DNA from: Auanema rhodensis
Taxonomy: Eukaryota; Animalia; Nematoda
Direction: 5' to 3'
Assembly (NCBI GenBank): GCA_964057225.1
Contig: OZ059898.1
Coordinates: forward strand, 13,640,001-13,704,000
Length of the DNA: 64,000 nucleotides
Below, in pieces: positions 27,426-43,400 of this stretch (position 1 is its first letter; each line of letters starts with the position of its first letter). The position numbers and the translations under genes are program-made. Under the pieces are notes generated by a model. The model saw nothing but the letters and a program-made list of their open reading frames with translations, had not been told where the DNA came from and made no database searches.

Positions 27426-30057
27426 TTATCCTGTATCTGTTAAATATTTTAAAAAGTTATGTGCATTTTGATAATCAACTAAATCTTCTTTCTGATTTAC
27501 TTGTGCAAGTTCACTTAAAATTTCCAAGAAATTATCTGAACGTATTGAAGTATTTTGAGGCTGAAATAGATAAGTTTTAAATTTTTTTTGTTATAATATG
27601 GAAACCTCTCGAATTTGTTTTCGTTTAAATGACCACATCTTATAATCAGGTATGAATGATATTGGAGATGATGTTGTTACTGTTAACTTCAATGGATATA
27701 TAGGTCTTAATGTAACTTCTGATGATGAAAGATTGATGAAATTATCTTCTGTTGTACGAGGCATTTCTAAATTAATTACAATAAGATTGTTATACAACTT
27801 AATTTGTAGTTCACCTGTTGTTGTTGTTGTTGTTCGACGAGTTATAACTCGTGGCATTGGGGTTACACGATAGCTTCTTGTGGACGATAAAGGAGTTGTA
27901 GTTGTAGTCGTGGTTGTTGTTGAGGTAGTTGTCGGTCTGGTAGTTGTGGGGGTTGAGGTTGTTGTTCGTATTCTTGGTGGCATAGTAACGATTACAGCAT
28001 TACGTGGTGAAGATGTGGTAGTTCGATATTCTCCTCTCTTTGATTCTGCTGTCAAGATGGCAAGCTTCCGTCTCAAAGCTGCTTTTCCTCGGTTTTTTCG
28101 GAAATTTCTGCGTTCTGGAGAATTCATGGCTCCAACTAAAAAAGGGGATTGCAACAATAATGATAAGATAATGGTACCAGCATTCAATGGTGTGTCAATG
28201 GAACTGTACTCCTGAGTTTCGGTTGAGTTTCCTTTTTCAAGTTCAGTTCGATGTCTTTTCAACATATTCTGAAGTAAAATGAGATCAAATATAAACTTTA
28301 AAAATTTTTTAACTGGATATCTAATACAGCAAGTGAACGGCGAACATTGAGTATAAGCTCCAGAACAATGACATGGTAATACGTTACATCGGATAGTTGC
28401 TGGTGGAACAATCAGACAATCCACATGACATGAAGGCATACTGAAATTCAAAAAAGAATATCAATAAGTTTTTTCTAAATTGAAAACCAATCAGGACGGC
28501 AGAATGGTCGGTGAGATTGTATTTCCTGCATAGGGAATGGAGCAAATTGGACATGTGAAGTACACTGAGGAAGACATTGGGGTTGACAAGATGGAGCGCA
28601 TTGAGCTGTAGGGTTTGGATGTATCACAACAACAAACGGCTGATTTGGTGTAGGAGATCCTTTAATTTAAAAAATATTTTAATAACTTTTGAAAACAAAT
28701 GAGAGAAGTCATTCAACCATAAAATCCAAACATAGTTACCTGGTAAAGTTGTAGCATGAACTGCGGAATTCTGACAACATTGATGACCACACCATCCCAT
28801 TTGGCAATGTGGAAACGGATCCTGTAATCAAAATTTTAAAGTAATACCATAAGGAACTAAAAGTTGTAACCTCATATTCACTGTACATGCTCATTCCTCT
28901 CATTCCGAATCGTTGCTTCTTCCGTACAAGATCGTTTAATTCTGTTTTCTTTTGCTTCTCTTCGATCATGTCATCGCTAATGATCTGTCGGTTCCGGCTT
29001 ATTGACGTTCGCTGACGTTCTGACGGGATCACCGCAGATGTTGTGCGACTATTGCTTGTAGTACTGCTAGTGCCACCGTTGACAATATTCTCGGGGAGAG
29101 CAAGATGTCGTTGAAAGCTTCCGGCTGTTTGCGGTGATGATGTTACAGGTGACGTCATTGGCGGCGTCTTTAGAGTAATACGAGGATACGGATCAAGCAA
29201 GGGAATAGGAGCATGAGCACGATGAGGTGCCGTATCTAATGGTTTTTGAATGAATGTTGATGCAGGTTGAATGAAAGTTTGATTTCCTTTAACTACAGGA
29301 TATAATGGTTGAATAATGGGTAATTGAATATTTTGTGGTTCAATTCGAACAAAATGTTGAAACTTTCGAATTGGAATAACTATAAAACAAGATTATAACT
29401 AGAATAAAATAAAAATTCTGATGTTACCATTAGGTTCTTGTTTGTTTAAGATTATAGTATTAGGATTTACTTTGTTATTATTACTCCATCTTAATTGATT
29501 ATACTCTTCCAGACTAATGGATCGTGGTTCAGATTTAAAATTCTAAATATATTAAATTATTTATAATAAAATAAAGGATTTAAAATTAATTAGCATATGA
29601 TTAAGAGCCAACTAATTCAAGTGTATATTCGGATTCACGTGAATGAGCTCACGTCAAAATTCTCATTTTTTTTTAACGTTAGCATAGTACTGGTGGTTGC
29701 ATTTAGAACTTTATATTTTTTATTTTTTGAATAATAAATTTCAAATTTTAGAAAAAAGAGGAATCTGGAAATGAGAAAGCAAAAAGAAACTTACGTTGGA
29801 TGGTTTCAGTTCTGAATTACCAATTGACCATGCTGCATATCTTTGAGCTATATCCAATAGATTAGCTTCCTAAAATGATGACATAATCAAAAAATATTAA
29901 TATTCAATAAAGAAAAAACTCAATTTTTTTCTTTTAATCCATATACAGTAATTTCAATTTAATTATAATATTTCTTTTTATCGCTTACCTCTTGTGAAAA
30001 AGCTTTTGAAGATAATATAATAGTTAAGAGAAAAATAATAATGTAAGTTGAAGACAT
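27426..30057 (-). CDS. Secreted protein with nematode Cys-rich repeats (CxxxCxPxCxxxC) and Thr-rich mucin-like tracts
   Basis: Signal-peptide exon MSSTYIIIFLLTIILSSKAFSQE (30057-29989). Later exons give CQMGWCGHQCC, CAPSCQPQCLPQC, CRPDCMPSCHVDC, CNVLPCHCSGAYTQCSPFTCC and a poly-Thr tract at ~27890-27965. The last exon ends ...LTDTG* at 27426. Some internal exon boundaries are approximate. Confidence 0.8.
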
Positions 30058-30484
30058 TCGCTCGTCAAATTCTAAAGTAGATTTGATTCAGAATAATGAA
30101 TATAGTGCTTGAGAGAATCTGCACACGTATGACGTTTTGACACTTTCTATATATCTAAGACAAATAGAATAATTGCAACCAAATATGGGACATGATGATG
30201 ATGATGAGAAGGATGACGAGATGAATAAACGAAAAGCGCAATAGGCTCATTCAGAAACTAGAAGACATGATATCTAATGAGATTATAGTGTATAGTAAAG
30301 TATATTTTTAAATTTTTTTTCAGTTCATATTGTATAATTATATAATAATAATTAAATTGAAAAGTTATAAATATATATATCTTTATTTTGTCTCTGATCC
30401 CGTCTACAACGAAAATAAATAAATAAATAATAAATAAATATAATATAATATATAATATATCTCCGATTCTATGAGCTGCTTGTT

Positions 30485-31468
30485 TTAGAGTCCCATTTGA
30501 CTTAATTGTGATAAGATGGACTGGTGAACATCACGTCTCATACGGAAGGATAGACGGCAGCTAAGAACCATTGGAGAACATCTAAAGAACTTTAATTAAC
30601 AAAAAAATTTCGATATTTATGATTTAACCTTGGTGGTGGTGGACCACAGTTTGGACATTCAACTAATGGAGCAGAGCATCTGCAGGGAACTGGACGGGGA
30701 GCTTGACACATGCATGGTGGTGGAGGTGGTGGTGGAAGTTCTCCCTAAAAATGTTGAAATGCTATTCTGAAATCTCTTGTAGCTGCTAAGTACCTGACAA
30801 CAGGGGTTTGCGGGTGTAGGTGCAGCAGCACAACAAGAAGATGGTTGTGGTAGTGGTGGTGGTTGAACCAAAGCTTGACAACATGGATTAGCTGGAGCTG
30901 GAGCTGCCTTGCAGCATGAGACAGTTGGAGAAATAGCAAGCTGAAAAGAATAACTAGTAAGCTTGCAACCACTCATTTTATTCTGATTTTGATAAAATTT
31001 TGAAAAGTTTAGGATAATCGTTTGAGAATATTTGCCTTTGTTCCGTTGATTATTACAAATTCACTAATAGGTGAAAGAATGATTGGAACTGGGACCAGAA
31101 TGGTCTGGAAGACGCTCTCTCTGATACCCGTTTTTACTACTAGAAATGAATTACCTGACAACATCCAGGGTTGGGTCGAGGAGCATTGCAGCATGATTCT
31201 TGCATTGGTGGGGGTGGTGGTGGAAGTGGAGCATTATTACAGCAAACAGGACATTGAGCACACAATGGAGGTGAGCTGCAACCACCTTGACCACAAAATC
31301 GCTTGACACGAGATACTGCTGTACTCTGTAATTAGCCGTATTAGTATATGAAATACATAAAAATAAAGAATAACAAGTAGTATATAGCATATTACTTACC
31401 GAAGATGGAGTTGGCTGAGTACTGAGGAAAAGCACAGAGCATGCAACAACAACAGATGAATATCTCAT
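30485..31468 (-). CDS. Secreted Cys/Pro-rich precursor (199 aa), putative cuticle or apical-matrix protein
   Basis: Exons 31468-31400, 31325-31155, 30940-30794, 30744-30629 and 30581-30485 total 600 nt in frame. It has a signal peptide, an RVKR site, a core with 26 Cys and poly-Pro runs, and an RMRR site near the C-terminus. Confidence 0.88.
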
Positions 31469-31535
31469 GGTTGGAGTGAGGAATTGAATTGAGCCAAATA
31501 AGTTAATTGATGATTGAAATCAGACCTGAACTCAC

Positions 31536-31544
31536 TTATATACC
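31536..31544 (-). promoter_or_regulatory. TATA box (GTATATAAG) of the Cys/Pro-rich gene
   Basis: Matches the nematode extended TATA consensus GTATAWAAG and lies ~70 nt upstream of the ATG at 31468. Confidence 0.7.
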
Positions 31545-32140
31545 CCCTGAACCGGTGTTTTTCTGCTCCTTGACATAGCTGTCAAAGGTCAGTACAGACA
31601 GACAATGAAACAGTCTGGGTAAAGCATAAAACTGGATTTTCATTTATCATTTAATTTCGGAACTTTCAAAACCGTTTCTGGATTATATAAGATTTGAAAG
31701 ATCATAGAAAACAAGTCTACGTCAATCAACAAAAGGTTGAATTTTTTCTAAAAAATTCTTCAAATCAAAAGAAAAAAGTTTTTATTTTTAGTTTAAGAAC
31801 ATTTAGATTGTGAATAAATTCGATTTTCTTCTTTATTTTCTTCAATTTATATTTCAACTGAAGATTCTATCCGATAATTGTGAATAATTTGTTTATTTTT
31901 AGAAATATTCTATACTCTTATTGTTTTCATATTTTTGTTTATTAATTTACATTTGTTACGCTAACATCAATCACGTGAATTTAGAATATTATTTTGATTT
32001 TGAAAAGACGTGAAAGCGGTTGTATACTGTTAACTATACAAACTATTTTTTTAATTATTCTAATTATAATGAGATGAAAGAGGGTTAGAAATCTTTATTC
32101 ATATAGATGTTACAAGATGAATATCATTGATTCTTCTATC

Positions 32141-32491
32141 TTACCAACCGTTGGCATCCCAGCACTTCATGGTCTTGTTGAATTCTTTGACAGTCATACA
32201 ACACCTAGAATGAAATCAAGTTGGAACTTGAAGTCAAAACTTGAAGCCTTACATGTAGTAGTTGTTGTTACAGTTGTGCATCTGAATATCAAGACATCTC
32301 TTATAACACTTGTCAGCACACCAGGTTTCTCTCCAGCTGAAAAGCTCAAAGTAAGGTTAGAAACTTAGAAGACACAACGTTTGGGGGATGGAAGCTTCAC
32401 AGTTGGATCCAGCAAGAGTTCCGTGACAGTAGTCAACGCAGGAAGCATAAGCAGCAGCAATGCAGACAGCAAGAACAATGAGGAGTTTCAT
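32141..32491 (-). CDS. Secreted 10-Cys peptide, copy A (86 aa; M>W variant)
   Basis: Reverse complement of copy B with the same three-exon structure. ATG at 32491, TAA at 32141-32143. Encodes RETWCADK rather than RETMCADK. Confidence 0.88.
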
Positions 32492-32594
32492 TCTGAAAGT
32501 TTGAGTTTCAAGTTGGAAAGTTGAAAAGTTGGAAGCTGAAAAGGAGAAAGATATGCAGGATGATGATGATGATCTGATGTTTAACTGTTAACTG

Positions 32595-32847
32595 CTTATA
32601 TACATGATTGTAATTTTAATAAAAAATTTAATATATATTATACTATATAGAATAAAATAAAAGTTTTATAATTTGGTTATAAAACTTTATTTTAAACTTT
32701 GATATCAAAAAGAATTTTATACAAACTTGTATCACTAAGTAGGCGTTAAAGAGCTCCCACTGTTTACAAGCCAGCATGAGATCTATTGAAAAACAAATTT
32801 CTTTTTTCTATTAAAAGTTCAAAAAAGATTAAAATTATGTATTTAAG
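32595..32847. promoter_or_regulatory. Shared bidirectional promoter of peptide copies A and B (repeated at ~38744-38996 for C and D)
   Basis: Outward-facing TATA-like boxes GTATATAAG (minus, 32595-32603) and GTATTTAAG (plus, 32839-32847). Forkhead-type TGTTTAC at 32761-32767. Confidence 0.65.
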
Positions 32848-32943
32848 CAGTTAAACATCAGATCATCATCATTATCCAGCATATCCTTCACTTTTCCAGC
32901 TTCCAACTTTCCAACCTTCTAACTTGAAACTCAAACTTTCAGA

Positions 32944-33295
32944 ATGAAACTCCTCATCGTTCTTGCTGTCTGCATTGCTGCTGCCTATGCTTCCTGCGTT
33001 GACTACTGTCACGGAACTCTTGCTGGATCCAACTGTGAAGCTTCCATCCCCCAAACGTTGTGTCTTCCCGAATTTCTAACCTTACTTTGAGCTTTTCAGC
33101 TGGAGAGAAACCATGTGTGCTGACAAGTGTTATAAGAGATGTCTTGATATTCAGATGCACAACTGTAACAACAACTACTACATGTAAGGCTTCAAGTTTT
33201 GAATTCAAGTTCCAACTTGATTTCATTCTAGGTGTTGTATGACTGTCAAAGAATTCAACAAGACCATGAAGTGCTGGGATGCCAACGGTTGGTAA
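32944..33295 (+). CDS. Secreted 10-Cys peptide, copy B (86 aa)
   Basis: Exons 32944-33056, 33100-33183 and 33232-33295 (261 nt; introns of 43 and 48 nt, GT-AG). Protein: MKLLIVLAVCIAAAYA-SCVDYCHGTLAGSNCEASIPQTWRETMCADKCYKRCLDIQMHNCNNNYYMCCMTVKEFNKTMKCWDANGW*. AATAAA at 33337-33342. Confidence 0.9.
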
Positions 33296-33525
33296 GAAAG
33301 AAGAATCAATGATATTCATCTTGTAACATCTATATGAATAAAGATTTCTAACCTTCTTTCATTTCATTATAATTAGAATAATTAAGAAAATAGTTTGTAT
33401 AGTTAACAGTATACAACCGCTTTCACGTCTCTTCAAAATCAAAATAAGATGTACCAAATTAATTTAAAGAAATAATTTAAAAGTTTATTTTATTAAAAAA
33501 AAAAGAAAAAGTTTTTTTGAATATA

Positions 33526-34815
33526 TTATTTGATATCAATTATAGTGGTTGGTCTTGCTTGTCGCTTATAAAGTTTAATTCTTAAAAATTGTATAACGCA
33601 TTTTCTATATGATGGTACGGTATATAATGTTAAAACTGATCCACATATAAAATAAATTATTAAACATGAAATAAGAAAATTTTGAATTTCTGCAGAAAAA
33701 AAAGGAAAATAATTGATATAAACAAAACGTTTTTACCTTTTACATTGTAACATAAATATGATAAAAGAAGAAATATAAAAGATATTATGGTAGCAATTAT
33801 GAGAGCAAGAGCCTTAATATAAATAATATTTTATAATAAACAAATATATTTCAAAAAAAAAAACAAATAAAAAATAATAAAAACCTGAATGAAATTTATT
33901 TTTATGAGCATTTTATGTGAAGTTAAAGTTTGTTGAGACATGCTGCTCTTGATATTATTAAATCTATTCCATGTAAGAGCCCCTAATGTACAAATTTCAA
34001 TCAAAAATAAAGTTAAATTTATCATAGTTAGCACAATATTGCTAATAATATATGAACCTGACTTTGTTAATGATATAATTAAAGTTTTTTCTTGTAAAAT
34101 ATCTTTTGGATCACCAGGATATATCTGGAAATTGATTAGGTTCAGTTTCACATAATGAAAACTATATGGTATAGTATAGTATGTCAAACCTTTAAACAAT
34201 CATTCTTTACTTCTTCAATATTTTCAATTTTTGTTATAAGAACAAGAATATTCGGAATTAGTGAATATCTAAGAAACGTCTCCATCTTTATTATATATTT
34301 AAGTGTTTTGTGCATTTTTATTTGTACAGCTTGATAACGAAAATGAAACATTAAGATTGTAATTCCACCGTAATCTTAAGAATATTTGATTATTTTTAAA
34401 AATAAAAAATTATAAAAGATACTTACAATAAAGTAATAAAACAATTACTAAAGTTAATGTAAGTGTTGAAACTCCAGAATATTTTAAAAGTCCCATTGGA
34501 TATCCTCCTAAACAAGGAGCTACAAACATAGGCATTGCTCCACATGACACAATAAATGAGAATAGTAGTCCACTTGAAAATATATTTGTTAAAAGAATTT
34601 TTTAAAATTTTAAAAACTATAAGTTCCATATGGAAGCACTTTCGTAATTCTCTCCAAATTAATATTAAAACTTACAAGAAACATTGTAAAAATAAACAAT
34701 TTCTATATTCGTTATCCATATTTGAAGGAGAATGGTATAAAACACAAAATGAAGCAATACATAAACATATAAATGATGTTGGAATACAAGTATAACATGC
34801 TATTTCGTAAATCAT
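33526..34815 (-). CDS. Serpentine 7TM chemoreceptor, Str superfamily (srd/srh/sri-like)
   Basis: N-terminus MIYEIACYTCIPTSFICLCIASFCVLYHSPSNMDNEYRNCLFLQ (SP..M..YR motif), multiple TM exons, loop MSQQTLTSHKMLIKINFIQ, and TM7 GSVLTLYTVPSYRK. Stop TAA at 33526-33528. Internal exons were not all frame-checked. Confidence 0.82.
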
Positions 34816-36376
34816 ATAACTAACTAAATAAATATAATATTAATTATTTATTAAAACTACTATCATATAATATTTTAAAAGAATTATGATATTCAAATAA
34901 AAATATAATTTTTCAAACACTTGGCACGTTTCCGAAGAAAACCTTCAACTTTAGTTAAATATCAATGGTTTTTATCTGATACTTGAAATGTTTTTTTTTA
35001 ATTTTTATGACAATAATGAGAAAAAAATTCAAAAAACCGAAAATAGAGAAGAATTCTTAAAAATATATTTGAAAAAAGAAGGGCTTGTTTATATTCTAGT
35101 AAAATAAGGATAAACTGTAAAAAATGCTGTAAATATACAAAAAATAAATAGTTTGAAATATATTATTTCTTGAAATGAAAATGAAAGATTTACACCTAGT
35201 TATTAAAGTTTTGCAAACTTGTTTTGTATTGTATTTATATAAAAATATAATAATAATCAGTTAGTATTAGTAGTGGTAATATAAAAAAATTGTTGTCTAC
35301 TTGTTGTATAAACACTGATCAAAAAGATGTTTTACTATATATTATATAATTTATTATATATTATTCTATATTATATCAAAATAATTAGATTAAATTATAG
35401 TTCAAACTTTATTTGAACAAATTTATACAACATGATATGAACTTTTTAACCATTTAAGTACCAGAAAAACTTTAATGTAACTTTCTATTAAAGTAAATCT
35501 CTAAGTTGGATAATTTTGAACTTAGGAATTGTCAAGTTAATGATTTGTTTTTCAGCAATCAGCACGGATTTCTGATATTATTAAAAGAAAAAGTTTTAAT
35601 TTTGAAAGATGCTTGTTGATGTAGCCGATAGAGACAAGTATGTGTTTCCATTATCAGATTTTCAGTGAAATATCGGCTTATTTTCATTATATTAAAATAA
35701 AATTTTGAGATTAAGCAATATCCGTCAACAGTACTTAGTGGTAGTTAAACATCTTTAGATAATCATAAGAAGAAGAAGAAGAATGAGAAGAAGAAGAAGT
35801 GAACAACAAATAAAAAAAGAAATTAGTTAAACTGGATGAAAGGATAAGCAATGAAAATAGTTTTTTCTTAATTTCAAATAATAATGGCCATAAAGCATAC
35901 TGTAATTTGCTCCGAAATGAGCCAATCACAATGCAGTATTCGAAGTAAAGTCCATGAGAACATTAACTTACCATAACTTATCACAAAATTCACAATTTTT
36001 AAATAAAAAATAAAAAATATGATACAAATGATTAAAAATAAATTCAAAAACATGATGAAAATTGTATTTTATTTTGATTTTTAAAAGAACGTTAAAAGTA
36101 CTTTTTGATAAAAAAAATTAGAATATATAGTACTTTTTAATTTTAATTTGTACTTTACATCTTTCCCTTTTTTTTTTAAAGATCAATTGATTATTATGTA
36201 ATTATGTAATTATATGATTATTTTGTTTTCATTTTGTTTATCAGTATTAAATATTTTATCATTATACATCATTAATACGTTGTTTTTTCTTTATATAAAC
36301 TTTTTTCTTTTCTTTTTTTTTGCTTATATATAAAGAATTAAATAATTTTTATGAAACATACAAATTTGTTAAATTT

Positions 36377-37711
36377 ATGATGTACATTTTATTATTTTTT
36401 CTATTACCTTTAGTATTTGCTGATAATATTCAAGAAGATGAGGTATATTTTAATATTTTTATTTCATTATATTCACATCTATCTATTCGAACTTGTTGCT
36501 TTTCAAACAATTTAATTGAAAACTCTGAAACGTTTTATAACATTATTGTGAACCATAAAGCATTTTAGAAACAAGTTTATTTGTTATATAAACAAATAAT
36601 TTTATTTTTTTACAATCATCAACAAAGTTTTAATTCAGTATGTGCAAGCTGCTGATATTCTTGCATTTGATGAATTATCCAAATCACAACTTGAATGTTT
36701 GAAAAATGAAGGATTTCAATCAATATTCATAAGGTTAAATTATAATTAAAATTTATAATTAAATATAAAATGTATAGAATACATCCATATGTTACTGCTT
36801 TTTCAACTGTTGATCTTGGTATTGCTCTAAGTCAAAATGCTTCAACAGGTATACTTTTGATGATGTAAATACAAAAAAAAGTGTTTTTTTCAGCTGGTTT
36901 TGAAGTAGAATTACTTCTAATTCCCAATATGAAATATATAAATATTGGATCAAAATTCTTTAGAGAATTTTATAGAAAATTGATTGCTCATCATTTATAT
37001 GCCAACAGTATATGGCTTGATGTGAGTGAAGTTTCATCCAATTTCATCAAAAAGCTCAATGCTCTCATACAAACCAATGATTTTAGGTTTCAATTCCAGC
37101 ATTTTGGTCAAATAGTTCACAATTTAATCGGAAATTTATTGATGAATTTTATAAAGAAGCACACGTAATAATATATAATATTATTCAAATATTAATTTTT
37201 AATTCAGAAAAACAATGTGAATGTTGGATTTCATACAAATCCCAATGATTGGTTCATTATAACTGATAATTATTTATTACCTGGAAAACGTTGTGATCCT
37301 GTTTGGTAAATATTTCATATTATTAGTTAAAATATTTGTTTTCTTAGGTATGATAGCAAACTTCCAGCTTCTGCCGAGCTGAGTTTTGACAATTTCGAAG
37401 AATTTGGAGGATGGACCTATGGAACTGTCCAGAATTACCAAAGCAATGAGCCATCAAAATGTGATGTCTGGATGACACAGTAAGTAATTTATATATAAAA
37501 TCACATAAATTTGATGATGATAATCAAAAAAAAGAGATGGGAAATTCACAAATCAAACCAAAAAAAAATGTTTTGCAGAATTGTATACCGTCCAAAGGGT
37601 ATGATGAATTCTGAAACTGAAGATAAAAATAAGAAAACATCAAGCATCAGGAAAATACTTCAATACATTTCATCAATAATAAGTTGGATATTACCAAATA
37701 AAAATATATAA
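36377..37711 (+). CDS. Protist-type (GH25-like) lysozyme, lys family
   Basis: Signal peptide MMYILLFFLLPLVFA. Motifs: AADI...SQLECLKNEGFQSIFIR, IWLD/VSIPAFWS, VGFHTNPNDWFIIT, PVWY, SFDNFEEFGGWT and KCDV. Exons are GT-AG bounded. Stop at 37709-37711. Confidence 0.88.
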
Positions 37712-38289
37712 TGAATATAATAAAATATTTTTTATGTAACGAATGTCTATTAGTTTCTTTATTAAGTATTTTCAAAGATTTAAAGAAGAAATACAAGCAC
37801 AATCTATAAAAAGCTTTTCTAACGTAAAACAATATTTGTTTTTCTATGTGTGTTTCATGTCGCTTTCATGTATGGCTACAACATTTCATGTTAACTATAT
37901 TATAATTCGTTTTTGAAACTAAAAAAGAAACTTAAAAGGTATTTTCTAATCAGATGCATAATCTGTACTGGATCTTTGCCAATTTTCCTATGTATACATA
38001 TATATACATATCTTTTTCCCGATTTTAGAAAATATTACTTGTAAGAAATATTTTGCAGGTAATATATTCAAAAAAACTTTTTCTTTTTTTTTTAATAAAA
38101 TAAACTTTTAAATTATTTCTTTAAATTAATTAGAATATCATTTTAATTTTGAAAAGACGTGAAAGCGGTTGTATACTGTTAACTATACAAACTATTTTCT
38201 TAATTATTCTAATTATAATGAAATGAAAGAAGGTTAGAAATCTTTATTCATATAGATGTTACAAGATGAATATCATTGATTCTTCTTTC

Positions 38290-38640
38290 TTACCAACCGT
38301 TGGCATCCCAGCACTTCATGGTCTTGTTGAATTCTTTGACAGTCATACAACACCTAGAATGAAATCAAGTTGGAACTTGAATTCAAAACTTGAAGCCTTA
38401 CATGTAGTAGTTGTTGTTACAGTTGTGCATCTGAATATCAAGACATCTCTTATAACACTTGTCAGCACACATGGTTTCTCTCCAGCTGAAAAGCTCAAAG
38501 TAAGGTTAGCAACTTAGAAGATACAACGTTTGAGGGATGGAAGCTTCACAGTTGGATCCAGCAAGAGTTCCGTGACAGTAGTCAACGCAGGAAGCATAGG
38601 CAGCAGCAATGCAGACAGCAAGAACAATGAGGAGTTTCAT
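38290..38640 (-). CDS. Secreted 10-Cys peptide, copy C (86 aa)
   Basis: Same three-exon structure. ATG at 38640, TAA at 38290-38292. Coding differences from B are synonymous. Confidence 0.88.
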
Positions 38641-39092
38641 TCTGAAAGTTTTAATTTCAAGTTGGAAAGTTGAAAAGTTGGAAGCTGAAAAGGAGAAGGT
38701 TATGATGGATGTTGATGATGATCTGATGTTTAACTGTTAACTGCTTATATACATGATTGTAATTTTAATAAAAATTTTAATATATATTATACTATATAGA
38801 ATAAAATAAAAGTTTTATAATTTGGTTATAAAACTTTATTTTAAACTTTGATATCAAAAAGAATTTTATACAAACTTGTATCACTAAGTAGGCGTTAAAG
38901 AGCTCCCACTGTTTACAAGCCAGCATGAGATCTATTGAAAAACAAATTTCTTTTTTCTATTAAAAGTTCAAAAAAGATTAAAATTATGTATTTAAGCAGT
39001 TAAACATCAGATCATCATCATCATCCTGCATATCCTTCACCTTTTCAGCTTCCAACTTTTCAACTTTCCAACTTGAAATTAAAACTTTCAGA

Positions 39093-39443
39093 ATGAAACT
39101 CCTCATTGTTCTTGCTGTCTGCATTGCTGCTGCCTATGCTTCCTGCGTTGACTACTGTCACGGAACTCTTGCTGGATCCAACTGTGAAGCTTCCATCCCC
39201 CAAACGTTGTATCTTCTGAGTTTCTAACCTTACTTTGAGCTTTTCAGCTGGAGAGAAACCATGTGTGCTGACAAGTGTTATAAGAGATGTCTTGATATTC
39301 AGATGCACAACTGTAACAACAACTACTACATGTAAGGCTTCAAGTTTTGACTTCAAGTTCCAACTTGATTTCATTCTAGGTGTTGTATGACTGTCAAAGA
39401 ATTCAACAAGACCATGAAGTGCTGGGATGCCAACGGTTGGTAA
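39093..39443 (+). CDS. Secreted 10-Cys peptide, copy D (86 aa)
   Basis: Same three-exon structure. ATG at 39093, TAA at 39441-39443, followed by AATAAA. Confidence 0.88.
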
Positions 39444-40347
39444 GAAAGAAGAATCAATGATATTCATCTTGTAACATCTATATGAATAAAGATTTCTAAC
39501 CTTCTTTCATTTCATTATAATTAGAATAATTAAGAAAATAGTTTGTATAGTTAACAGTATACAACCAGTCATTTATATTGAATAAAACTTTTTATATTTA
39601 TCATCTATTTAACTTTATTTTTCTTTAATATACTTTTATATTTCTCTGTTACAACCCTACAGTAGTAGGCAGTCTTTACAACATTGTTTGAGTTTGGGCC
39701 TCTATATGTATTTGCAGTAGCAGTGACCTAGGTTATAACCGGCTTAACGTATGATTATATGAACAGTGAGGCTTTAATCTTAAAAAGTAAAGCTAGATCT
39801 CTAAGGACAAACATAAAATATGAATTTATTTATTTATTATCAAGAATATAATGTTATATCAGATTATTCAATGTATTATACTAAGAAATATACATAGATG
39901 ATAATGTGATTTCTATAAAATCCCTTTATCTTCTTAGATTCAAGGATATAAATAAAAATTAAAATTAAGATTCTACTTCGTGTCAAGATATTTGAATCTG
40001 GCGCCATATTGATGGATAGTAGTTGACATCGTTATTGAAATGATTGTTGTGATTAGCATACGAATAGAAAGGTAACATAAGGACAAAAGAGTTATAAAGA
40101 AAGAAATTTAGAAAAGTGATGGATAACATTCGTTCAAATGAATATTGATGTTAACGGTATCAACATTTGAATTGTTGTATTGTTAGATATTATTGTTTTC
40201 AATGAGTGATGTTCTGTATTCGATGAATCTAGTGAGCTATCATGGGAAAAGTTTAGATAACTCATGTTCTTCTTTCATGAGATATACATACCTATATGCC
40301 TGAAGTGTGAGGACTTATGGGAATATGGTACTCTTATGTTGATAAAT

Positions 40348-40350
<3 letters not shown>

Positions 40351-40402
<52 letters not shown>
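40351..40402. repeat. (GA)n microsatellite
   Basis: 26 perfect GA units. Confidence 0.95.
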
Positions 40403-40405
<3 letters not shown>

Positions 40406-43400
40406 GAACGTCTGAGTTTTACAGTAACCAAGGATAATATGCAGATAGCTGAGAACTAAAGAATGGAACAACCATAACTAACCTAAGATTTAGTTCTTAG
40501 TTCACTGCTCATAAATTTATAATTATATAGAATAACTTGATTATTTAGAACATATACATATAAAATTATTTTAATTATTTGACCCTTCAGATATTATTTC
40601 AAAAAAATTTTATATGAGGAAGAAAAGTTTCAAATATTCAGTTTAATATATCTTCTTGTAATATGATAGTTTTTGAATACAGGTGCTAATAGAAGACTGT
40701 ATTGTTGTAATTTTCTATGTTGAAGTGAATTGAAGAAGCTAGGTATAAGTTCTTTCATTTCTGTCACTTTTTCTGTTATATGATACTTCCTCAACCAGAT
40801 AGACACAGAAGAGAAGGCTATGAAATCCCTTCTGACCCTCACATCTTCTAGTTTCTCTTCGTCTTCAAATTCAGTATCTTCTTCTCTGTATTATTGTGAC
40901 ATTGACGTCAACAACATCTAGCCTTACCTATCATCCTCTCTAGTTAGTAATAAGTACTTGGAATAACCATATACGTATATAGTATAATAGAAATACAGTT
41001 ATAAATTGAATTACATGTGTTATTGACATGTCATGTTCAAACTATTTAGAAATCTGTATCCATCATCCGTCAATAACTATTCTATACAATATAGTTACCG
41101 TCAAGCTTTGCCGACATTATTACAAGGTTGTTTCTCATTGAAAATGAAGTCAAATGTAAATTATAATGATTACCTGTGCATGAATACGATTTCAATACTC
41201 TGACTAATAGAATACATGTGATGTATATACATATATATAAATAGTTAGTACATAGTTAGTTTAATAAACTATATATATATACATATATAGTTAGTTAGTT
41301 TAATTAAAATATATTAAATAATATATAAAATAATTTAATATATTATATATATAATATTATGAGCATATGTTTATTCTAGTAAACTATTATATTTCTTTTT
41401 CTTGAAAATGTAATAAATACATTTATCATATACATATGGATTAAAAAGAAAATGAGAGATGAAGAAGAAGACGAAGAACAGAAAAAAACGCAACCGATCT
41501 GCTCTGACGCAATATAAGAAATGGCTTTAATGCTTGATTGTCTAAAAAAAATTTCACGTGACCTTACCAACACGTAAATCAAATTAGAATAAAATATTGA
41601 GATAAATAATTTATATAAGATTTAGTTTAATGTTTATATAGTATAGTCTACATATATTATACAAGTTCGATTAATAGGTTCTATCCCTTCTTAACCTCAC
41701 ACCTGATGTGTCAACATTGCTCACATCATTAATAGAAAATTTATTATTATTTTTCATTCTGATTGACAATGATATTATCATTGTTAAAATTACAAAAACA
41801 AAGAAGAGAAACATCTATTTTCTAATAGTTTAATATTAATTTATACGCATATAGTATATACAATTTAATATTTTTCCCCTTGTGTTAATCTTCATAAATA
41901 ATAGTCACACCTCTACTTCATACCCTCATTTTCATCTCTTTTTTTCACATTTTATTTCTTTTTTTTTTAATATTTATATGTTCTTTTATGGTCATTGTAT
42001 GAGATAAGTTGAACATATGTAGTTATAGTGGTCAAGGTCTACTAATAACTACCTTGGCACCATGGTGGTCATCATGTTTAATGTGTAAGAAGCCTATCTT
42101 ATGCGATAATCTGATGTAATATCTTGTACCTAATGACGATAAAACAGATTCTCACTTATTCGAATTATATGAAAAAATTACACCTGTTGCTTATAATTAT
42201 CTAAAAAGGTAAGATATATATGTTATCTAACTATATGCATATTTATTCATTTTTCAATACAAATCTAGTTAATTATAAGGTATATTATATATAAATAGGT
42301 GTAGATAAACCTGTAATTTTATGAAAAAAAAGAAATAAAATCACAACTTATCTTATTTCATTTAATATACATATAGTTAAAAACTCATTCTAATACTATA
42401 CACATATACTATATCATATAATATAATTATAATTCATAAACTTGTTTCTTCTCATCATTCTTATAAATATATAATTTACATTTACTTTTAGATTAGTAAT
42501 ATTACAAATAATAAAAAGAAATATGGAAAAAAAAGTTTTTAAAAACAGAATTCTGTACATACGAAATGCATAAAAGACATTATCTTTGATTATAGAACAT
42601 CTGAATCCACTATATCACATCACAATTTTAACATATTGTTTGAACCAGATGAGAGCAGATGAATTATCGTCATCATACACATACATACACACACACAGAC
42701 ACTACTATCTGTCAGACAAAAATCCAGAATTTCAATGTTGGTGATGACGTCGATCAACATCAGCATTCAGCATCTTGTTCATTGTATTAGATGTTACTCT
42801 CATCAGTATTCTCTGCCATGATTGTCAGGAAAAAAAACTTTTTTTCTGTTCTTCTCTGTTCTATTTCATTCTGTGATATTCGTTGAAAACCATTTATAAT
42901 TTTTTGACAAACTCTTCAACATCTGTCTCTTAATCCAAGAAAATTAAAATTATCCATATTTCTAAATTGAATTTGATGTCTTTTGAGTTGTCATAATAAA
43001 ATATTCAATCTACACCACGTATGATCATCTTCATTTTCTTTTTTTTTTCTCAGATATTCTACCAAATCATTCATTAATTTAGAAATAATTCATATTTGAC
43101 TCTTCAATTAGAAATAACTTTTATATATTCTCATATTATAATCAATGGAAAATAATAAGAATTAGACCCTAAATTGTCTATAAATTCCAAAAAAACAGAG
43201 AAACAATAGATCATCATCGATATGACCTTGTGCTCAGAAAAGAGGGTAAAAGAGAAGAAAAGATCTATTGAGCTAGTATTGAGATATAGAAGACACTTAT
43301 TCTAATTATTTTATAAATTGCTTTTAAGTTTCTCTTTCTAAATCTTAAATATCTTCCTATAGCTAATTCATCATTTTCTATTTAATTTCTATTTCAAATA

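Follow-up and report, generated by a model that had tools for sequence, protein, structure and literature searches.

Analysis of a 64,000-nucleotide stretch of the Auanema rhodensis genome (contig OZ059898.1 of assembly GCA_964057225.1, positions 13,640,001 to 13,704,000; referred to here as the window and numbered from its first letter) indicates that a group of six genes near its middle is probably one local cluster within a large family of nematode secreted peptides that evolve in concert, together with two passenger genes, and not a functional island. The order of the genes is a pair of peptide genes (copies A and B), a seven-transmembrane (7TM) chemoreceptor gene of the Srh family, encoding a G protein-coupled receptor (GPCR), a lysozyme-like gene, and a second pair of peptide genes (copies C and D). 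A sequence-only reading had described two divergent peptide-gene pairs around the GPCR and lysozyme genes, 1.44-kb flanking units forming direct repeats 6149 bp apart, and an inversion of copies B and C about the core; this layout agrees with the repeat scan, the alignments and the gene models presented below, while the function assigned to it, a co-regulated response to microbes, finds no support.

Regarding the architecture, a repeat scan over 29000-42500 was combined with a four-way alignment of the arms, an alignment of the spacers and a blastn search of the left unit against the window. The direct units (31981-33419 and 38130-39566) extend over 1438 bp, are 97.5% identical and have starts offset by 6148-6149 bp. 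Each unit is itself palindromic, with arms of about 570-630 bp that are 95-99% complementary and flank a spacer of about 195-260 bp. The left unit (arm A, spacer, arm B) occupies 31981-33450, the unique centre of its spacer (about 195 bp) being placed at 32621-32814 by the spacer alignment and by contig depth, and the right unit (arm C, spacer, arm D) was placed at 38130-39566 by the repeat scan and blastn; read in direct orientation, the spacers match each other at 99% identity. The inverted relation between B and C is longer than the direct repeat and includes an extra 72 nt, located at 33457-33528 on the B side and in inverted orientation at 38060-38131 on the C side, which are 100% complementary and common to these two sides only. 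This stretch terminates exactly at the stop codon of the GPCR gene and carries the 3' untranslated region (UTR) and poly(A) signal of that gene. With the extended inverted match the units can equally be described as 1.5-kb inverted repeats (32018-33528 and 38060-39566) around a 4.5-kb core. The termini of the arms are unlike, with A, B/C and D stopping at separate points and the D arm, the earliest truncated, keeping homology to 39566. The blastn census of the window detected four peptide copies and no more, along with a single lysozyme-like gene and a single GPCR gene of this kind; the latter two genes are divergently transcribed across 1561 bp and each is convergent with one peptide copy.

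The four peptide genes are located at 32141-32491 (copy A, reverse strand), 32944-33295 (copy B, forward strand; exons 32944-33056, 33100-33183 and 33232-33295), 38290-38640 (copy C, reverse strand) and 39093-39443 (copy D, forward strand). All gene models have three exons of 113, 84 and 64 nt separated by GT..AG introns of 42-48 nt and encode 86 amino acids (aa), confirming that these are real, intact genes for secreted-type products. The proteins of B, C and D are identical and that of A differs by M43W. The product has a signal peptide with cleavage after A-Y-A, followed by a mature part of about 70 aa with ten cysteines in the spacing C-x3-C-x8-C-x12-C-x3-C-x3-C-x7-C-x6-CC-x11-C. Each arm is equipped with a TATA-like box of its own, which precedes the ATG by about 105 nt, a TTTCAG acceptor of the spliced-leader (SL) type 1 nt before the ATG, and an AATAAA about 40 nt downstream of the stop codon. 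A near-palindromic 22-mer with a 7-bp stem (TTGTATA/TATACAA) and an 8-nt loop, found at 33380-33402 and at the equivalent place in each arm, lies about 90 nt 3' of the peptide stop codon; the homology of copy D stops about 15 nt beyond it, at 39566.

A phmmer search of the peptide against 1.84 billion cluster representatives returned a single true relative, the Auanema protein P0002 (90 aa, E=7.6e-8), while two further matches, to repeat proteins over short stretches, were discarded as spurious. A profile search with the peptide alignment likewise returned Auanema proteins only, and a word-based homologue search with the peptide gave no match. P0002 and its cluster mates belong to Auanema sp. 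JU1783, which has been described as A. melissensis (PMC9984802). Three of these A. melissensis proteins (P0002, P0005 and P0006) score 30.9-32.9 bits against the Pfam domain DUF7772 (PF24977), above its gathering cut-off of 25 bits; the window peptide matches positions 7-79 of the 99 in this profile at 15.9 bits (E=0.017), which is under the cut-off. The window peptide is 38-41% identical (aa) to its A. melissensis relatives, and the alignment preserves each of the ten cysteines, the tryptophans W39 and W81, and the F-N-x-T sequon. The genes of the two species have the same three-exon layout and intron positions, with an exon 2 of 84 nt in both. Judging from the phmmer match, the aligned cysteines, tryptophans and sequon and the common exon structure, the peptide appears to be a diverged member or sister of the DUF7772 nematode family, to which Pfam assigns no function; a literature search for DUF7772 and PF24977 found no mention of either. 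AlphaFold2 with a 9-sequence alignment gave a mostly helical model of low confidence (predicted local distance difference test, pLDDT, 61.6), with which a search of the AFDB clusters returned noise only and no meaningful fold match, and a feature search of the ESM Atlas with P0002 gave scores below 0.8, which are uninformative.

The A. melissensis proteins of 90 aa (CAI4226144.1 and others) thus share with the window peptide a signal peptide, the cysteine frame C-x3-C-x8-C...C-x3-C-x3-C-x7-C-x6-CC...C and the sequon, but only a small number of dispersed copies (about 8 entries) is found there, in contrast to the high-copy gene of the window. On the A. melissensis contig CALQYR020007291.1 (79.6-91.1 kb) the DUF7772 genes of P0005 and P0002 are divergent, and the roughly 10 kb that separate them contain stretches of N and tandem repeats of 167 bp arranged as inverted blocks. 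This arrangement loosely recalls the head-to-head pairs.

Copy number was assessed from contigs of three DNA runs (X6, X9 and X10, the last two from another study than X6) and of the RNA run X11 placed on 32588-38059, using the word depth of the assembled contigs, which is a proxy for copy number. In X6 the exact-match contigs of the core have a depth of 221-247 (1x), and the exact-match contig of the spacer has a depth of 544, or 2.2x core, as expected for two units. A diverged spacer variant (32631-32797, with 14 substitutions and a 1-nt gap), also found in X9 and X10, has a depth of 253 in X6, i.e. 1x, which points to at least one further palindromic unit of the same spacer type, a third unit, outside the window. 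The arms are far deeper: an arm contig at 33277-33384 has a depth of 3923 (16x core), one at 33073-33181, which includes intron sequence, has a depth of 10221 (41x core), and the summed arm depth in X6 is 10,000-36,000 or 40-145x core, although a summed depth is not itself a copy number. The same excess is found in X9 (arms 354-850, core 5-19) and X10 (arms 22-40, core 2-4). Despite the caveat on depth, many genomic copies are indicated by the ratios of single contigs in the same run, by the spacer showing the correct 2x value and by the presence of intron sequence in the deep contigs. About 290 distinct X6 contigs fall on 32588-38059, mostly on the arm, and many of them depart from the window sequence at about 32904-32936, at 33445 or at 33510, indicating that the remaining copies lie in other contexts. 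The peptide gene unit of about 600 bp is thus apparently present at roughly 40-145 copies, and the four local copies are a small part of a large family.

The variants carried by the four copies show traces of exchange. The informative sites comprise three AC|BD events (a 7-nt indel counted once), three AB|CD sites and two AD|BC sites, and these three partitions are interleaved along the arm and are incompatible with a single tree, which points to gene conversion or crossing-over. The arms are 97-99% identical with introns and UTRs included. Variants that are private to one copy within the window are common in X6: the TG variant of A that gives M43W (equivalent of 33113-4) has a depth of 10221, about 41x single copy, the T of C at 33051 has a depth of 10604, more than 40x single copy, and the T of B at 32920 has a depth of about 5400, about 22x single copy. 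As these variants are widespread in the family, the local copies are mosaics drawn from a genome-wide pool. Among the high-depth coding variants there are seven events (nine changed bases), five of which are synonymous third-position changes, and the two nonsynonymous events are M43W and K76H, the latter retaining the N-x-T sequon. The predominance of synonymous changes argues for purifying selection on the protein and not for decay of a repeat's cargo.

Regarding the history of the locus, the spacers, like the arm markers closest to them, stand in direct register (AC|BD). An inverted duplication may first have created the head-to-head A/B pair; a second inverted duplication of about 1.5 kb (32018-33528, including 72 nt of the 3' flank of B) would then have set a copy beyond the lysozyme-like gene, and arm-to-arm recombination would have flipped the spacer, accompanied by patchy gene conversion. 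This is most likely the route taken, the alternative to its last two steps being a direct duplication followed by conversion of the C flank from B. Gene conversion between arms, between units and between loci would keep exons, introns and UTRs 97-100% alike, with purifying selection keeping the peptide intact. Recombination between 1.4-kb repeats of 97.5% identity is plausible. With respect to the structural lability proposed earlier, the three variant partitions speak for recombination in the past, whereas no present-day deletion or inversion allele was seen in the short-read contigs, which are unable to reveal such alleles. Newborn gene duplicates in C. elegans are often adjacent and inverted (PMC2728529).

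Adjacent inverted paralogues that are alike beyond the coding sequence, signs of conversion and purifying selection are therefore all found at this locus, as in other gene clusters evolving in concert, and clusters of secreted-peptide genes evolving in this manner are a kind already known in nematodes. In such a cluster the Srh chemoreceptor gene and the expressed lysozyme-like gene would be passengers with their own regulation, each probably controlled independently of the peptide genes. Several points weigh against this interpretation. Contig word depth gives no more than a proxy of copy number, and only four copies are present within the 64-kb window, the others being inferred from depth and not seen directly. 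The expression evidence comes from one small RNA run that reports presence only and not absence, the comparison with A. melissensis is distant (39% aa identity), and the peptide itself may have a role in microbial defence.

A stronger version of the copy-number result would be that the peptide gene exists in the order of a hundred near-identical copies, mostly absent from or collapsed in the assembly, and that its palindromic pairs act as a genome-wide recombination substrate which brackets, inverts, duplicates or deletes environmental-response genes, the chemoreceptor and lysozyme-like genes of the window being examples. This seems improbable at present, but if true it would constitute an engine of structural variation driven by a gene family, and the product under selection might be a peptide with a dosage-dependent role in defence or reproduction. 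Similarly doubtful is a reading of the 600-bp arms as a gene-carrying mobile or foldback-like repeat, two insertions of which happen to bracket the core in the manner of a composite transposon. The arms are indeed high-copy with fairly sharp common ends, contigs diverging from them at 33445, at 33510 and upstream at about 32904-32936, and the copies are set as inverted pairs. However, no target-site duplications are visible at the arms, their termini are inconsistent among A, B/C and D, no transposase is present, and the sole open reading frame of the arm is that of the peptide gene. The spacers, moreover, are single- to low-copy, and the unit is a complete, selected gene whose intron positions are kept in A. 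melissensis, where it is low-copy and dispersed. An identity as a transposon was rejected for want of consistent termini or target-site duplications.

Regarding the two passenger genes, the Srh-family 7TM gene (33526-34815, reverse strand) is intact, with six exons, GT..AG sites at all junctions and 316 aa free of stop codons. Pfam, run exon by exon, gave collinear matches to Srh (PF10318) for exons 1, 2 and 4 with 14.4, 24.5 and 23.2 bits, covering profile positions 6-45, 51-96 and 163-238; each match is under the cut-off of 26.3 bits singly, and they sum to about 62 bits. A hydropathy scan revealed six clear hydrophobic segments after merging of peaks, the helix near residues 120-150 not being resolved. 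The collinear Srh matches over profile positions 6-238 support the earlier assignment of this receptor to the Str superfamily. Srh receptors form a very large neuronal family. Variant contigs of X6 over GPCR exon 4 (33869-34234) have 4-8x single-copy depth (e.g. 33948 C>T, 1790/2036), so that the receptor has several close paralogues at other sites of the genome, with an identity of at least 88%. The divergent intergenic region between the GPCR gene and the lysozyme-like gene (34816-36376) contains a (GAA)n-rich microsatellite at about 35760-35810, and a spike in depth is found at 35699-35881 in all runs, including the RNA run.

The lysozyme-like gene (36377-37711, forward strand) was modelled by hand and then compared with RNA contigs of X11. 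An 820-nt contig with a depth of 27.2 connects every exon, with splicing at the GT..AG sites that had been predicted, and also exposes a last intron at 37480-37578, giving a gene of eight exons whose transcript runs from 36341 to at least 37694 and whose product is 266 aa long with a signal peptide. The last exon (37579-37711) adds a tail of 44 aa that is lysine-rich and then hydrophobic (..ILQYISSIISWIL..) and might be a membrane-association signal or one of the glycosylphosphatidylinositol (GPI) type.

Searches with this product used single exons, the N-terminal 105 aa and the C-terminal 159 aa. Pfam returned no family, including GH25 (PF01183), for any of these at E values up to 10. A phmmer search of the PDB gave nothing significant, the best match (E=0.16) being an unrelated GH99 enzyme; a word search with the C-terminal 159 aa found no homologues, and a feature search of the ESM Atlas with exon 7 gave scores below 0.8, which are uninformative. 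AlphaFold2 applied to the C-terminal 159 aa, run without an alignment, gave a pLDDT of 45.8, unusable for assigning a fold. The product appears to have a collinear series of short motifs like those of protist-type (GH25-like) LYS proteins (..CLK..G...IR, WLD and FGGW). The RNA-confirmed junction 37021/37087 encodes W-L-D-V-S, presumably where the GH25 catalytic D-x-E would fall, a placement that is provisional and not based on a computed alignment; should it be correct, the product may lack catalytic activity. The protist-type lysozyme of the sequence-only reading thus found no backing in Pfam, the PDB, the word search or AlphaFold2, and the lysozyme label remains a lead. The protist-type LYS lysozymes of Caenorhabditis (PMC2383907; PMC3169628) are of similar size and also have a signal peptide. 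Unlike them, the window protein gains no support from Pfam, the PDB or homologue searches and carries the additional C-terminal tail of 44 aa. It also differs from them in reading D-V-S where D-x-E is presumed.

The sequence-only reading had combined these genes into a co-regulated microbe-response module, in which receptor, lysozyme and antimicrobial-type peptides act together and the flanking repeats tune their dosage or orientation. The products of all six genes are indeed secreted or membrane-bound and belong to classes that are frequently associated with environmental interaction, and the lysozyme-like gene is transcribed. Protist-type lysozymes also contribute to pathogen resistance in C. 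elegans (PMC3169628). Nevertheless, the module is very unlikely. Co-expression of the six genes was not seen in X11, where the lysozyme-like gene has a depth of 13-34, the GPCR gene has a depth of 0 and the local peptide copies were not assembled, the only peptide transcript being that of a spliced paralogue located elsewhere (94% identical in exon 1, with a different exon 2); this is a weak test, as the contigs of one small RNA run report presence and not absence. Synteny offers no help either, since tblastn at three A. melissensis peptide loci, covering up to 10 kb of each flank (shorter where a contig ends, and interrupted by long runs of N), found no lysozyme-like or GPCR match, the neighbors of the peptide genes there being genes for ribosomal L22, a clathrin adaptor subunit, a zinc-finger protein, Piwi and a phospholipase D-like protein. 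In a repeat scan, which is not a dedicated motif search, the peptide promoters and spacers shared only AT-rich low-complexity matches with the intergenic region of the GPCR and lysozyme-like genes. The GATA-type sequence CTGATAA is not enriched (15 observed vs 17 expected) and thus provides no argument for intestinal promoters. With tens of family copies elsewhere, and roughly 40-145 in all, chance alone would be expected to place a peptide gene next to any given gene. Confirmation of the lysozyme identity is lacking, with D-V-S at the presumed catalytic site, and the Srh receptors belong to a neuronal family of very large size. There is thus no link that would make the six genes a single defence module, and the co-regulated reading is unsupported.

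That the duplicated units are an artefact of assembly or of haplotypes, a concern raised with the original proposal given that near-identical palindromes are hard to assemble, is highly improbable and already largely refuted by the spacer depth of 2.2x core, by the fixed substitutions that separate the two units, and by unique junction contigs in independent runs from two studies, namely those of X6 at 33410-33528 and 33499-34112 and those of X9 at 33410-33641 that span the junction of the B flank and the GPCR gene with no mismatches. In X10 the core is represented by a low share, which is a matter of low coverage and not of a deletion, because the core pieces in that run match exactly.

Among other features of the window, the stretch just to the left of the six genes (30500-31500) has a GC content of 40-43%, a strong positive GC skew and cysteine- and proline-rich reading frames, and this GC-richer stretch is probably another gene. 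Scans of the window with Rfam and for tRNAs gave no match.

An apparent island of six genes is thus reduced to a simpler and testable object, at the core of which is an unannotated, strongly selected family of secreted peptides, for which protein databases offer no more than a handful of Auanema sequences and one functionally uncharacterised Pfam domain. The kinship with DUF7772, the high copy number, the family-wide pool of variants, the RNA-confirmed splicing of the lysozyme-like gene and the finding that the A. melissensis loci have no lysozyme or GPCR neighbors are new. If the copy number holds, the family would rank among the larger nematode families of peptides that evolve in concert and be a good system for studying palindrome-mediated gene conversion. 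The locus also calls for caution in annotating genes, and in deducing function from adjacency, in genomes of this type.

Among known systems, the hsp-16 locus of C. elegans reportedly consists of four small genes in two divergent pairs with short common intergenic promoters, the pair being duplicated as an inverted repeat. The likeness to the window lies in the two divergent pairs of small genes, but each hsp-16 pair is said to hold two different genes, with no foreign genes between the pairs and with products that are not secreted peptides. The NSPC peptides of C. elegans, encoded by 18 genes in clusters on chromosome X whose complete deletion gave no detectable phenotype (PMC12406010), resemble the window family as multi-copy, clustered, near-identical small secreted peptides, but have no sequence relation to it. 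Families of small secreted nematode proteins with concerted evolution, inverted genes and purifying selection have been reported (Thomas, 2006, Genetics 172:2269, as summarised in PMC2383907), and the Caenorhabditis clusters are reported to consist of small, secreted, nematode-specific proteins with adjacent inverted copies, in which paralogues are homogenised including their non-coding parts while the coding sequence is under purifying selection, all as in the window. As far as that summary describes them, the window differs in that its family belongs to another nematode, is DUF7772-like with ten cysteines and has an apparently far higher copy number (about 40-145x by word depth), and in that its palindromic pairs bracket unrelated genes.

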